Assembly (NCBI GenBank): GCA_010909165.1
Contig: VJWM01000063.1
Coordinates: 496,001 to 560,000 of the forward strand
DNA from: Anthoceros angustus
Taxonomy: Eukaryota; Plantae; Anthocerotophyta
Reading direction: 5' to 3'
DNA length: 64,000 nucleotides
The notes under the pieces were generated by a model. It did not search any database and was not told the DNA's origin. It was given only the letters and a program-made list of their open reading frames with translations. The translations under genes and the position numbers were made by a program. Of this stretch, positions 53,201 to 60,810 are shown piece by piece; position 1 is the stretch's first letter; each line of letters opens with the position of its first letter.

Positions 53201-55460
53201 GAGCTTTCGGTCCTTTTTGCACTTTGTTTAAGCTGTCATCCAGGTAAATGGAGAATTTGTCACCGTGACACCAACTGGTTTCTCCTAGTGCATGATTGTA
53301 CCTTTACTGCTAATGTTTCTATTGTGCAGGCTGAGAACGCAATTGATCGAATGGATTGGATGGACAAGATCACTGGAGTGATTGCCTCCCTTTTGAACTC
53401 TCAAGTGACAGACCAGGTAATGGACAAGCCCACAAATTACCGTCCAAATCTCCAGCACCTGAATTGAGCATGATGATAAATCATGTTGGGACTCAGTGGA
53501 ATCCTAGAGCTGCAGTAGAATGTCCGCACATCTCAGAAAACGTTGTGTTTACTTCAGAGACCTCCTCGGAGTCCAATGCTCGGGCACAATCGCACGGCCA
53601 GTGAGAGCAGCTCTGTGGGCTCGGATTTTGACCATGTGACGCTGGATGAGAGGGGCCATTATTCAGCCCCTCGGCGTGACCCCTCTTCCCGGGGCATGCA
53701 ATTGACCTATCCTGGGCATGATTATCATGAGAGGCCCCTCGACATTTTGAGGCGTGTAGCCGGGAATGATGTGTGTGCAGACTGTGGGGCCCTAGATCCA
53801 GATTGGGCCTCCCTAAACTTGGGTATTCTTGTGTGTATAGAGTGCTCAGGTGTACACAGAAACCTCGGGGTTCACATTTCCAAGGTATTGTACACCTTCG
53901 TTTTCCTTTTCTGCGTGATTGAGCCTTCACCTGGTGGAGAAATATCTCTTCTCTCCGTTCACTGATGCCTGTACTGGTTCATAGGAAATGTGGGATCAAT
54001 TTTATTGAAATCAAACGAATTTATAGGCGGAAATGCTTTGAGTGGACTAACAGTTTGAATGGTTTTTTTTTGGGTACAGATGCGGTCGTTGACGCTGGAT
54101 GTGAAGGTGTGGGAACCTTCAGTTATTGGATATTTCCAATCCATTGGCAATCAATATTCAAATTCAATATGGGAGGAGCTTCTTCCACGGTGGGAAAATG
54201 ACCGAAGGGCTCGAAGTGCATCAACTGGTGGCATACTAGATAGGTGTATATTTGATATACACCTATCTAGCATAATTTTTTTATATTATATTTTATTAGA
54301 GTGACATGTGTACTAGTGTTCGTGTCTTTTATGCTGATGCCTTAGCAGAATTTGTGCTAACCCTGTCTGTGGTCTGCTGAGCAGAGCTGCTGACAGACCC
54401 TCTGTGGATGTACTCAGAGTGAAACCAGATGCAAGGGATCCACTTCCGATCAAGGAAAGGTTTATTCAAGCTAAGGTAGACTCATATTGTTGAGGGCTTC
54501 TAATGAGCAATTTGTTTGCCTGTTTGTGTGTTTGTCTATTTTCATCTTTTCTTGCTCCGGTTCCTTGCACATTGCTGATTCACTTTGCCCCCAAAGAAGC
54601 AGAAAAGTGGCTGGTTACTGAAGCAAGGTTATCGATGTGAAAGTCTGATAATATTCTTTGTGGGCAGTATGTGGAGAAGAGGTTTGTGCAGAGGCTGAAG
54701 TACGATCCTAGAGGTCCAACGGTGGCAAGAAGCATGTGGGATGCAGTTCAAGAGGGTAATAAGCAGGTTGTACTTCGTCTGATAGTCACAGCAGATGGTG
54801 ATGTAAATACCACGTATGAGCAAGCAATGGCTGCCGAAGGATCTCCTCTTCTGCGTGGATCAAGCGGAGCTAGAAAGTTCCTGGATATGTCCAACAGCAC
54901 CAGGAGCAGTTGGAGTGGCCCCATCGGTGTTGGCTCCACCTCCCCCTCCTTAGTGCATTCCCGGTCGGTTGCCTCTTCACTCACATCAAGCCCTGTCTCT
55001 AGGACTGTGGCTAATGTCGCGGCGTCTAATGCTTTCCTGAAAATTGAAGTGGAGAAGGATATGCATGGGTGCACATTGCTTCACTTGGCCTGCCAGATGG
55101 GTAATCTGTCTATGGTTGAGCTGCTTCTTCAATACGGGGCTGCAGTCAATGCTACCGACAGATTGGGAAGGTCACCGCTTCACCATTGTATTCTATATGG
55201 CAAAAATTACTGTGCCAAGTTGCTGCTATCCAGGTATTCTCCCAAGCTAAGCAAATCTGTAGTGTGATGTGGATTCAGTTGTCCTGCTCTGAGACTTTTG
55301 GTATGAGAAGAACGATTATGATTCATTCTGTACTTGCAGAGGAGCTGACCCTTCAGCTGTGGATGGTGGAGGAAAGACTCCACTGGAGAGTGCTGTGGAG
55401 ATTGGTGCTATTACGGACGAGGAGCTGTTCGTCATGTTGGCAGAATCCTCGCACAGCTAA
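50221..55460 (+). CDS. ARF-GAP with BAR-PH-ArfGAP-ankyrin architecture (AGD1-4/VAN3 class), multi-exon
   Basis: [15 protein letters not shown]; [25 protein letters not shown]; [39 protein letters not shown]; Arf[40 protein letters not shown]; ankyrin [10 protein letters not shown]; ends LAESSHS*. Confidence 0.95.
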
Positions 55461-56089
55461 TATTTAGTTCCAACCATCAGGTGTATAGTACAACAAATTG
55501 CTGATTGTGATCATGTATGATGGTAAACAGTTAGACGATTCTTTCTCCAGCATGGAGGGGGAGTTCATTTGGTGGCCGGTGGAAGCAGGCTTCAATCAAG
55601 GGATTGGGTGTGGAAACCATGAGATAGTCTTGTATCGTGGATCAGTCTTCTGAGATATCTTGTGTATTTAATTCTTGCTCAGAAGCCAGCGAAGGAATTT
55701 GAACTGCAGAATTCACATACTAGCAGTCTTCAATACATGGAATTCACAAAATTTACCCACTCTCATCGCTTCCAAGTTCTCACTCGTCGAATTCGATCCC
55801 GAAATCACGCTCGGGCCTTAAGTGACAAAGGCGAGGATTACAAAAAGCCAAAGGCTGATATCAAGGTTCCTATACCCCCTGAGTCTCACGACCGATCCCT
55901 GCTTGGTTTGCGTCACTTCTGTATCAGCAGTACCCTTCGGCAGCCAGATGCAGGCCACTGTTATCTTGGTTCTTTTGTCTGTATCTGCTCTCACCGTACA
56001 TGTTGTGCTGGCTTCAGACAAGTGTGGCCAGCTTGCCTCTCAGACTTTTGGCAACAGAAGATTTAATGTGATTCATTCTGTACTTGCAG

Positions 56090-56216
56090 AAGAGCTGACC
56101 CTTCTGCTGTAGATGGTGGCAGTGGAGGAAAGACTCCACTGGAGAGTCCTGTGGAGATTGGTGCTATAACAAATGAGGAGTTGTCCATCATGTTGGCAGA
56201 ATCCTCACACAGCTGA
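56090..56216 (+). other. Tandem duplicate of the ARF-GAP terminal exon (intact acceptor, frame and stop)
   Basis: Homologous to 55340-55460 at offset 750; identical acceptor GTACTTGCAG; reads [41 protein letters not shown]; 3' flank also duplicated. Confidence 0.85.
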
Positions 56217-56899
56217 TATTTAGTTCCAGCCATCAATTGTACAGTACAACAAGATGCTGATTTGTGATCATGTATGATGGTAAACAGTTAGACGATTCTT
56301 TCTCCAACATGGAGGAGAGTTCATTTGGTGGCCGGTGGAAACCATGAAAAAGTCTTGTATGTACCGTGGATCAGTCTTTGGAAATACCTTGTGTATCTCC
56401 CTAAACCCTAAACCCAATTCTTGCTCAGAAGTCAGCCAAGGAATTGAACTGCAGAACTCACATACTAGCAAGATTTAGAGCAGGAGCCCGTTTGGTTGTT
56501 GCCGCATAAATTCAGCAGTGGCTTATTCCTCTGCCTTTGGATCCATCCTTGAGAATCCCGTTCCCGGCTTTCAGTTATGTACGCGAAATATCTTAGTTCA
56601 CGCATTCGAAATATCTAAATTCACGCATTCGGAATAGGTACAGACATATCTTAAGGTTGACGCATTCTCAGCAGTCAGTGCCGGCCACGTTATCTTGGTT
56701 CCTTTGTCCCTAGCCTCTGCCGGCTATGACGGTCATCCGTCCTTAGTGGACTGAAAAACAGTTTTTCTTCTTTTCTCACTGTAGGTGTTGAGCCGGCTTG
56801 GGGTCAGCTTGCCTCTGCCAAGTCAACTGGCAGGGCCCATGCCTTCCATAAATCCGTCAGCCGCAAGATTGGCTGGAGGATTCCTCAGGCCCTCTCCCA

Positions 56900-59027
56900 A
56901 TGGCGAGCACGAAAGCCTTCTTGCTTGCTTTCGTCGGTTTAGCCCTCATACTCGGCAACTCTGCTTCGGGATTCAAGATAATCGAGGCCAGCATCTCCGA
57001 CGTGCAACTGGCATTCCGGGGAGGAAGGGTCACCTCTGTCCGACTAGTGAAGCTCTACCTCAAGCGAGTGAAAAAATACAACTCCCAGCTCAACGCCATC
57101 ATCGAGATCAACCCCGATGTCCTGTACTGGGCCAAGAAAGCCGACCGAGAAAGGTGCAAAACGCCTGCAGGCTGCTGCACGATGCATCTCAGGCTGGTTC
57201 TGTAAGAAATGAGCATGGACGGGAGAGTGACGTCCATTATTGCATGTATGCGCCAGGGCTGCGGCAGGCGGGCACATCGGAGGCCTCCACGGCGTCCCGG
57301 TCCTCCTCAAGGACAGCATCAACACCAGAGACAAGCTCAACACCACGGCAGGATCTTTCGCGCTGCTCGGCTCCAAAGTCACCAAAGAGGCCTTCATCGT
57401 CAAGCTCCTGCGCCGCGCGGGGGCCATCATTTTCGGCAAGGCCAACCTCAGCGAGTTCTATCACCTCCGCTCCCTCCAGCAGCCACAAGGCTTCAGCCCT
57501 AGAGGCGGCCAGACCAATGTACGCCCAGTGTCGCGCAATTTCATCTACGCCGCAGCCGATCTTGATTCCGTGTTCCAATGCCTCCGCATTCGGTTATCCC
57601 TGTGATCTGCCTCTCCAGGATGCGTACAACGTCACGCTGAACCCCAGCGGAACCAGCTCAGGCTCGGCAGTGGCCGTCGCCGCCAACTTGGTGCTTCTGT
57701 CCATCGGCTTCGAGACACAAGGCGCCATCACCCAGCCAGTCAGCAGGAACGCGGTAGCGGGCCTCAAGCCGACCCCAGGGCTCACCTCCCGCACCGGGAT
57801 CGTCCCCATCTCCTTCAGCGCTGATACGCCAGGGTAAGCGTCTCCAACCATTGCGTCTTGGCACATTCCTGGATTGAAGCGCCTTCTCACACATTCCTGG
57901 AATGAAACCCTATCTCACTGAAGACTGAATGCTGAAAGCTGAAAGGTGGTCTGAATCCTGAGTGCTGAAAGAAGGTCTCACTCTTTGGAACAAACCGCAG
58001 GCCGATCGGGAAGTACGTAGAAGACGTCGTAGCGCTGCTGGACGTGATCGCGCACCGCGATCCAGAAGATCCTGGCAGCCCATACCATTGCCAGCGGCCG
58101 AAGAGGGGATACCAGGCGCATAAGCTGCTTGACGGGCTGGTCGGCAAGCGCATTGGCATCGCACGCGACTTCTTCCAAGGCCTTCCCGACTTCAAGCTAT
58201 CGGTCCTCGATAACATTGTCTCCGTGCTTGTGTAAGAAGTTGTCCCATCCGAGATTCGAGCGCAGGATCCGCTTCCTGCGAGGCCACCGCCTCCACCACT
58301 CCGCCAACACTCACACCTCATCGTTTGTCATTTCAGCCAGCACGGCGCGATCGTCATCGACAACACCACCATCAACCCCGACCTGTTCGACGAGATCTTC
58401 AATGGCGTGGCGCCGTTCCCGGCGCCGCTCACCGCCGACAAGTTCGTGCTCCTCTCCGACTTCAAGGTGAACATCAACAATTATCTGGCCACGCGGAAGG
58501 AGAGCCGCGTCGCCACGCTCAAGGACCTCATCGCCTTCGATCAAGCCGATCCCCGCGAGGTAGGTTCTCCAACACCGTCTTCAATTTCTGTCTGGAAGAA
58601 ACACACGTGTCTCCAGCAACTGATCAGGAAGAACTCGGATGGGCGCGTTTGGCCATGGCAGCAATTCAGTAAGTTCCCGGACGAAGTGTTCATCGCAGCA
58701 CAGAACCTGACCTCGGGTCAATCCAGCCAGGAGTACTTGCTGGCGCAGCAGATCGTGGCGAGGCAGAACCAGCAGGGGCTGGTGCAGGTGTTCAGCGCCA
58801 ATGAGCTGGACGCGCTGCTGGCGCCGGCAGACAGCAGCATAACTTTGCCAGCCGCGTTGGGGGGATTTCCCACTTTCACTATCCCGGCCGGCTACGATCC
58901 CACATCGGGCCTGCCGTTCGGGGTTTCCTTCCTGGGGAAGGCTTGCAGCGAGGCCAAGCTGGTTGAGATTGTGTTCCCGCTGGAAGAGATTTTGAGGGTC
59001 AGGAAATCGCCACCGGCGTTTCCTTGA
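56900..59027 (+). CDS. Secreted amidase-signature family protein (At4g34880-like), catalytic Ser residues substituted; 6 exons
   Basis: Exons 56900-57153, 57257-57518, 57619-57833, 58001-58231, 58337-58559, 58662-59027; signal peptide [24 protein letters not shown]; [66 protein letters not shown]. Confidence 0.92.
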
Positions 59028-60514
59028 AATCTTGTGGGTCAAGGTGCGGGGTGTGGCAGGCGCCGGCTGGACGCATAGCCGAAACCTTTGATCATCACTT
59101 CAGTTTCGTGGACATCGACAATACGACGTAGGCTGTGGTATTTCATGGTGCCCGGCTGTGAGATGCAACGCACCTGGGTTTTGGGTTTGGGCATTTAACT
59201 TTGTTGTAGTTTGAAAGGTCGAATCCTTGCATCAAACACCTCTGCACCCGACCCCCAGACCTTGGACCCTTTCGTCCCCTCTTGAATTCAAACTCAAACA
59301 AAGAGCATACCCTCCCGCGCACGGCAGTCGAGGGATATGAGGCAGCTGGCGGGGAAGTCTCGAGAGAGCGGCCTAGGCATGGGGCCGACCAACGTGGTAG
59401 GGCAAGAACACGGCTGAGCGGATTGTGGGAAGGGAACCTTTCCGGGAGAGGAAACAAACAGACCCGCGAGGAAACCCCTCCCGGCTTCTCTTGGCGACAT
59501 GCGGCCAAATGTTGGGCGTCGTTGCAGAAGGCAATAGCCAAGCACGAGTACCATGTTCAGGTATTGGCAGATTGGCGGGAGACGATGAAAAGCATTCGTG
59601 AGGAGCAACCAACTTGGGGACCCGGCTCCTATTCTCGAAGTGGCCGCCTCCTCATTATGTTCTGGTGTAACAGCTTGAGAGTTCAGTTGAAACATGGCTT
59701 TGGTGTGTTGTAGGAATGGTCCTTAGCTTCGGGGCGCGGATTAGGTTAGGAACCTTCCTTCGCCCGGATGTATTCGGTGGTCCATTTGTTTGGCCGCGCA
59801 TTCATTGTTGTACATCCGCCTGATCTTTAGATCCCTGCTAAGATTCATTCTCTTTACATGAAGGCTGTTGTATTCGGTGGTCATTGCTATTTCCTTTGTC
59901 ATCACTTGTGCTGTTGTTGAAGGTCGGGTTTGGCCTGCTTGATACAAGATCACTTGGACAGATATGTGTCTTTTGTAAGAGACCGGATGAGGATTTGCGT
60001 CACTTGCGATCAGCGGTAATCGGTGGGCATGTATGCATTGTCAGCATCCGTGTGTTAACATTGTAACGTTGTGTGACATGGTAAGCATTCCACGGCACCG
60101 AATGTCATCATCCGTGTTGTTGGGAAGATCAAACGACAAGTGTAAACTGTGTGCTTCTTACAAACGATGAAATGTGAGCTTTCACGTTTTGGGAACCTCA
60201 AACGAGAAGGTGCAACTGCAGACCCGTGCACTCCCACACACAGGCTGCTGTACACAGTGTAAACAACAGCCAAATTCCATGGAAACACATCCCGCGTGGC
60301 ACGGTATCACTCAATGCAATCAGAAAACATAGTTTCAATCATCTGCCGTGCACCCACGAGGCAGGTGCATACAAGGTAATGTATAATGGTCAGCAGTAAT
60401 CGGTCCCTGATGATCTATTTGTCACAACAGCCTCCGTGCGCCAACAAACAAGCAAGGAGGAATTCCACTGTCGTCATCTTTCCCCGTACAAACCCGGCCG
60501 GCACGAAAAGCGTT

Positions 60515-60810
60515 TGGGAATTCCACTTTCACGATCCTGTTCGGCTACTACCCTGAGGCGGCGGGCCTGCCGTTCGGGGTTATACTTCCAGGGAAGCCTT
60601 GCAGCGAGGCCAAGCATAGCAGGTTGAGATTGTGTTCCCGCTGGAAGGTATTTTGGGGATCAGGAAATCACCCCTGCCGTTTTCTTGAATTTTCATGGGT
60701 CAAGGTGCAGTCAGGAGCAAGCGCCGGCTGGAGGCAGAGCCGAACTTTGATGATCACTTCAGTTTCGTGGACATCGACCACGCCGTAGGCTGTTGTGTCT
60801 GGTGGTGCCT
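60515..60810. repeat. Diverged direct duplicate of 58860-59150 (amidase 3' end plus ADPRM 3' end)
   Basis: Shares GGGCCTGCCGTTCGGGG, TGCAGCGAGGCCAAG, GTTGAGATTGTGTTCCCGCTGGAAG and ATCACTTCAGTTTCGTGGACATCGAC. Confidence 0.88.

Follow-up and report, generated by a model that had tools for sequence, protein, structure and literature searches.

The bacterial amidase Pam of Stenotrophomonas maltophilia (1m21, 1m22, 5ac3) is a single-domain amidase-signature protein and an active hydrolase, with a published catalytic triad of Lys123, Ser202, and Ser226 (PMC11732141; this numbering equals chain numbering plus 37). In plants, Toc64 carries Gly in place of an active-site serine (Ser170), and it showed no amidase activity (PMC2174300). 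Toc64 and OM64 are thought to act through binding (PMC2174300; PMC8393822). Another branch of the family, the clade of At4g34880, is uncharacterized and has no known substrate, ligand, or partner (PMC8393822). Proteins of this clade have N-termini that resemble secretory signals. To our knowledge, Toc64/OM64 is the only catalytically dead case described in the plant amidase-signature family. More generally, catalytically dead relatives of enzymes often acquire binding or regulatory roles.

Here we describe a plus-strand gene of the plant At4g34880 clade (56900-59027) in a stretch of 64,000 nucleotides of Anthoceros angustus DNA, which as a whole we call the window. An earlier note on this DNA had read the gene product as a secreted amidase-signature protein without its catalytic serines. 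Like Pam, the window protein has a single domain, and the two share the motif frame GSSSGS...GTETDGS...CP; in contrast to the full Lys123/Ser202/Ser226 triad of Pam, however, the window protein has Lys/Thr/Ala. Like Toc64/OM64, it is a plant amidase-signature domain in which an active-site serine has been replaced (Gly170 in Toc64, Ala208 here). However, Toc64 is anchored in a membrane, faces the cytosol, is fused to a TPR domain, belongs to the other branch, and carries a single substitution, whereas the window protein has both serines replaced, no TPR domain, and a signal-peptide-like N-terminus. Consistent with the lack of a TPR domain or anchor, Pfam gives only Amidase matches, and the protein ends where its At4g34880 homologs end.

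An intact six-exon gene

The coding sequence spans 1551 nt and encodes 516 amino acids. It contains no internal stop, all five introns (100-167 nt long) have GT-AG borders, and three codons, for Arg, Gly, and Val, are split by introns. The gene is thus intact and free of frameshifts, as the earlier note had claimed. Database searches and family scans were run exon by exon. Exon 1 (56900..57153) starts with the ATG at 56900, encodes the signal-peptide-like N-terminus, and ends at a GT donor. Exon 2 (57257..57518), which carries the Lys of GVPVLLKD, matches Pfam Amidase with E=1.1e-17, and exon 3 (57619..57833), which holds the amidase-signature core, with E=6.4e-16. Exon 4 (58001..58231) is identified by a Pfam Amidase match (E=1.9e-4), its splice sites, and a spliced contig from run X16; exon 5 (58337..58559) by alignment to homologs and its fit to the length of an X16 contig; and exon 6 with its TGA stop (58662..59027) by a match to the C-terminus of Pfam Amidase (E=3.9e-5), alignment, and an X16 joint. 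All six lie on the plus strand, and the profile positions of the PF01425 (Amidase) matches on exons 2, 3, 4, and 6 are colinear.

Contigs from X16, a run on a related organism that we guess to be RNA, give a probable view of the processed transcript. One contig of 747 nt connects 57832 with 58000 and 58559 with 58662, in both cases with GT..AG borders in the window. Between 58230 and 58351 the same contig carries 15 letters, in agreement with the length predicted for the exon 4/5 junction. Among the loose ends of X16 contigs, one has the end of exon 1 abutting exon 2, and the one at exon 6 reads CAATTCAG.... The related organism thus appears to make a spliced copy with the same borders, which supports the gene model. 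Directly upstream of the ATG, about 700 bp are tandemly duplicated (55287-55979 versus 56037-56708) as several blocks that are 84-93% identical.

The N-terminus of the window protein consists of Lys5, a hydrophobic core of 13 residues (6-18), and then N-S-A-S-G. By hydropathy and the -3/-1 heuristic only, the peak is 3.04 with a candidate site at SAS-G, and the N-terminus is similarly hydrophobic in 93 of 104 homologs, which agrees with the signal peptide named in the earlier note. There are five N-x-S/T sequons in the protein. We infer that secretion via an N-terminal signal peptide is plausible.

The nearest full-length relative that we retrieved is P0012 from Selaginella moellendorffii, named "probable amidase At4g34880", which is 51% identical, colinear with all six exons, and has Ser at both catalytic serine positions (Ser/Ser). 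Two trees place the window protein as sister to P0012 (support 1.0), within the land-plant members of the At4g34880 clade, and both proteins have the unusual Gln of GTETQG. The best solved relative is Pam, with E=1.2e-19 and 4.3e-16 for exons 2 and 3, respectively; among solved structures, Pam also lies nearest to the clade as a whole. For residue comparisons we aligned the window protein with 104 full-length plant homologs using mafft --addfragments; in hmmalign output exon 6 was shifted by about 16 residues, and the exon 3 results are the same by both methods.

Database searches returned only more distant relatives. With exon 3 as the HMMER query, the best match has 64% identity and no match has the Thr/Ala combination. 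A word search with P0012 returned plants that are all Ser/Ser, except for the orchid protein P0211 and a fused gene model from Prunus. Word searches with the open frame around exon 3, against proteins of 192-612 and 83-262 amino acids, yielded no close relative, and a metagenome scan yielded only bacterial amidases. Because the protein searches gave no close match, we take the window's own protein to be absent from the collections searched. Among the fetched sequences, P0004, P0005, and P0006 are proteins of 840-1550 amino acids with two amidase-signature domains each, and their second domains are without the catalytic serines (Thr/Gly, Ala/Gly, and Ser/Asp). In the Prunus model (P0154, Prunus campanulata, 773 amino acids), the nucleophile position of the second domain is occupied by Ala and the preceding Gly is replaced by Val; this domain probably represents a tandem copy in decay.

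Both catalytic serines are replaced

In the window protein, the cis-Ser position is Thr184 (ACC, 57652..57654) and the nucleophile position is Ala208 (GCC, 57724..57726). The two codons are exactly 24 codons apart in the frame of exon 3, and the phmmer alignment with Pam (1m21/5ac3) is ungapped, placing Thr184 on chain Ser165 (Ser202) and Ala208 on chain Ser189 (Ser226). Thus the Thr and the Ala that the earlier note had reported are confirmed at the level of codons and alignment. The catalytic Lys is kept, again as that note had stated: Lys103 (AAG, 57309..57311), in VLLKD, falls on chain Lys86 of Pam (Lys123), and 103 of 104 homologs have Lys there. Comparison with At4g34880-like and bacterial amidases, which the same note had suggested, underlines how unusual the two replacements are. 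Pam and all 104 full-length plant homologs are Ser/Ser, so that neither Thr at the first column nor Ala at the second occurs in any of the plant homologs; among the domains aligned from all fetched proteins, 311 of 321 are Ser/Ser.

The changes extend beyond the two serines into the surrounding catalytic loop. Where relatives read GSSSGS ... GTETDGSILCP, the window protein has GTSSGS, a correctly spaced stretch that departs from the Gly/Ser-rich signature (GGSS[GS]GS type) in having Thr for its first Ser. Phe203 (TTC, 57709..57711) replaces a residue that is always Thr or Ser in the homologs, namely the first T of GTETDGS. Downstream of the nucleophile position, the window protein has Thr210-Gln211 (ACC CAG, 57730..57735) where the family has Leu/Ile and then Cys, and this Cys is 95% conserved among the 104 homologs. 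The changes at Phe203, Thr210, and Gln211 are found in none or few of the 104. For instance, Thr210 is absent from all of these canonical homologs and is common to a clade of Thr-type orchid proteins. At the nucleotide level, Thr to Phe at 203 needs at least two base changes and Cys to Gln at 211 needs three.

An active hydrolase of this family has the triad Lys/cis-Ser/Ser, and the window protein has Lys/Thr/Ala. Because both catalytic serines are replaced, no amide hydrolysis is expected: amidase-signature catalysis passes through a covalent acyl-enzyme, which is very unlikely to form here, and the window protein is very likely unable to hydrolyze amides. We infer this loss of activity from the established knowledge of the triad and the precedent of Toc64. 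We also considered RNA editing as a route back to Ser and rejected it, as converting GCC to UCC would take a G-to-U change.

Parallel changes in orchids

We screened every fetched protein at the two serine columns. The combination of Thr and Ala at the same positions is found in Phalaenopsis equestris P0211 (XP_020587271) and in Platanthera zijinensis P0301 and P0310 (KAK8934977/78), and Platanthera P0076 and P0309 (KAK8951791/92) have Thr and Ser. All five of these orchid proteins have, as does the window protein, Thr two residues past the nucleophile. P0310 retains the Lys and has a signal-peptide-like N-terminus. The orchid Thr-type proteins differ from the window protein in keeping the Cys and in reading TDL where the window protein reads FET, and none is annotated as inactive by its source. 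Although the source of P0301 calls it "Toc64", this protein groups with P0310 ("Amidase 1") at 90% identity or more and has the motifs of the orchid Thr clade.

When these three columns are masked, the tree groups the orchid proteins together (support 0.999), next to Ser/Ser proteins from Dendrobium, nested within the monocots and far from the window protein. Given this distance, the tree indicates that the three substitutions (Thr, Ala, and Thr) arose independently in the orchids and in the lineage of the window protein. The two orchid lineages with Thr/Ala are not each other's closest relatives, which suggests that loss of the nucleophile, following the Thr changes, may have happened twice. 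As a control for chance sharing, single canonical homologs have 0-3 otherwise unseen residues in common with the window protein. By this measure the number of residues shared with the orchids is unremarkable; what is remarkable is their position in the catalytic core.

The orchid proteins also bear on whether the window protein could still be catalytically active with altered chemistry, perhaps with Thr184 or a neighboring Ser of GTSSGS working with Lys103 on another substrate. The Lys and a hydroxyl at the cis-Ser position are indeed kept, Ser185 and Ser186 are intact, and in P0076 and P0309 (Thr/Ser/Thr) the Thr variant occurs beside a nucleophilic Ser. However, the residue that would form the acyl-enzyme is Ala in the window protein, and Phe203, Thr210, and Gln211 alter the nucleophile-positioning loop. 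In every tested amidase-signature enzyme that we know of, changing the nucleophile from Ser to Ala abolishes activity. Toc64, with Ser changed to Gly, likewise showed none (PMC2174300). We therefore regard altered chemistry as improbable.

Much of the remodeling predates the split from related organisms

Contigs from other sequencing runs allowed us to assess both the accuracy and the age of the changes; 40 of the 281 differences between contigs and window are listed, so that the absence of an entry, as at 57652-54 and 57724-26, carries no weight here. The DNA contigs of run X1 have no substitution over 57286-57820, a result that speaks to consistency only since X1 may be the source sample. 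They do have single-base homopolymer deletions at 57071, 57419, 58418, and 58934, within four exons. These look like errors of that run's contigs rather than real frameshifts, because the frame of the window matches homologs on both sides of each site.

The X1 deletions imply errors in at least one of the data sets, and so raise the question of whether the loss of the serines is itself a product of assembly or base calling, or else is bypassed by an alternative exon that restores GSI. Several lines of evidence speak against this. No substitution separates X1 from the window across 57286-57820, at least five separate catalytic-loop codons are changed, and the window's frame fits the homologs on both sides of every homopolymer. 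The splice form restoring GSI that the earlier note had named as a possible refutation was sought with tblastn, which found no second exon-3-like sequence within the window; it follows that no alternative exon there could restore GSI. An artefact is close to refuted as an explanation, and we give it almost no weight.

Together, the changes at invariant codons of exon 3 require at least 10 base substitutions. Within exon 3, 5 bases separate the spliced X16 contig from the window, and both have A at 57734, the middle base of the Gln211 codon. Likewise, one X8 contig differs at 4 of 174 bases and also has A at 57734. Set against the 10 or more changes needed, the 5 differences of the X16 contig mean that half or more of the exon 3 remodeling predates the split from the X16 and X8 organisms. 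In contigs of more divergent paralogs (X1, X2, X8, and X16), A>T at 57734 is among the differences listed, and with T at this position these paralogs are also unable to encode Cys. In run X2 (organism B), six contigs with a summed depth of about 360, versus about 50 for single contigs, all have T at 57734, which suggests a multi-copy paralog family in that organism.

A decayed copy reveals selection on the 3' end of the gene

A second, decayed copy of the 3' end lies downstream of the gene on the same strand. By blastn, 58862-59152 and 60516-60809 are 80.7% identical, and the duplicated unit is a tail-to-tail junction of the amidase 3' end and a convergent minus-strand neighbor. The amidase end of the first copy is intact. 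In the second copy, what is left of the gene is a partial version of its final ~53 codons (60516..60682, plus strand), recognized by blastn, its indels, and its loss of invariant family residues. Pfam scans of short ORFs from the neighboring minus-strand gene and from its fragment gave no match.

The amidase fragment serves as a neutral comparator for the intact gene, with differing codons polarized by the alignment of 104 homologs. Of 53 shared codons, 18 differ; at 14 of these the gene has the more common family residue, at 1 the fragment does, and 3 are ties. Changes at invariant columns (two Pro, Ala, Phe, and Leu) are found in the fragment only. Frame-breaking indels occur in the fragment alone: it has a 3-nt and a 5-nt insertion and a deletion at its start, making three indels in ~170 nt, whereas the gene has no indel in 1551 nt; at the fragment's indel rate, the reading frame of the gene would have been broken many times. 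The 14:1 retention of family residues indicates that the C-terminal part of the gene was under purifying selection throughout the ~19% divergence of the copies, in a test that spans the last 53 codons only and does not date the loss of the serines. This result favors the earlier note's view that the gene is not a decaying pseudogene.

We also examined the rate of evolution of the whole protein. Relative to the Ser/Ser sister P0012, the window protein has 57-65 versus 40-48 unique changes (chi2 1.6-5.5), which suggests evolution that is only mildly faster overall, as judged by a test that spans a very long branch and is insensitive to recent relaxation. At invariant columns, there are 18 changes in the window protein versus 8 in P0012. 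Those in the window protein are concentrated in exon 3, where they fall at 7 of 33 such columns versus 11 of 105 elsewhere.

Could the gene have encoded an enzyme until recently and have only just been inactivated, as a member of a tandem birth-and-death array that has acquired no stop or frameshift yet? The decayed amidase fragment within the window itself fits such a history, as do the 18 versus 8 changes at invariant columns and a branch somewhat longer than that of the sister. It is less easily reconciled with the catalytic loop, in which codons changed by several steps (two bases for Thr to Phe, three for Cys to Gln), or with the contigs of other organisms, in which half or more of the derived bases (10 or more in all) are also present. 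The gene also lacks any indel in 1551 nt while an equally old fragment gained three in ~170 nt, and in orchids the Thr/Ala/Thr state persists in two genera. For these reasons we consider a recent inactivation unlikely.

Discussion

Based on these data, we propose that the gene probably encodes a non-hydrolytic protein of the amidase fold that enters the secretory pathway, is maintained by selection, and acts through binding. The signal peptide would bring the protein into the secretory pathway. There it would present the amidase fold with the catalytic Lys and the Gly/Ser-rich loop retained and the nucleophile gone. It could then act by binding either a ligand, such as an amide or peptide, or a partner protein such as a tandem paralog. 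A binding role is the most likely one because selection maintains the gene without hydrolysis.

In a full-text search, we found no paper that uses both "amidase signature" and "pseudoenzyme". What is new here is the replacement of both serines in a secreted-type, Pam-like protein and its recurrence in orchids. A broader possibility, which we advance only tentatively and consider doubtful at present, is that secreted plant "pseudo-amidases" of this kind have arisen repeatedly and form a class with its own specific non-hydrolytic function, as opposed to accidental losses of activity. In such a class, Thr would replace the cis-Ser, a second Thr would appear two residues past the nucleophile, and Ala would then replace the nucleophile itself. 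If the class exists, its members might capture amide or peptide signals or regulate active paralogs.

For the family, a secreted and maintained member without catalytic serines would offer a handle on the At4g34880 clade. A dead enzyme may retain its ligand, and so may help to identify it. In addition, the occurrence of the same residue changes in orchids suggests a repeatable evolutionary path. The present value of the gene is that of a well-founded lead.
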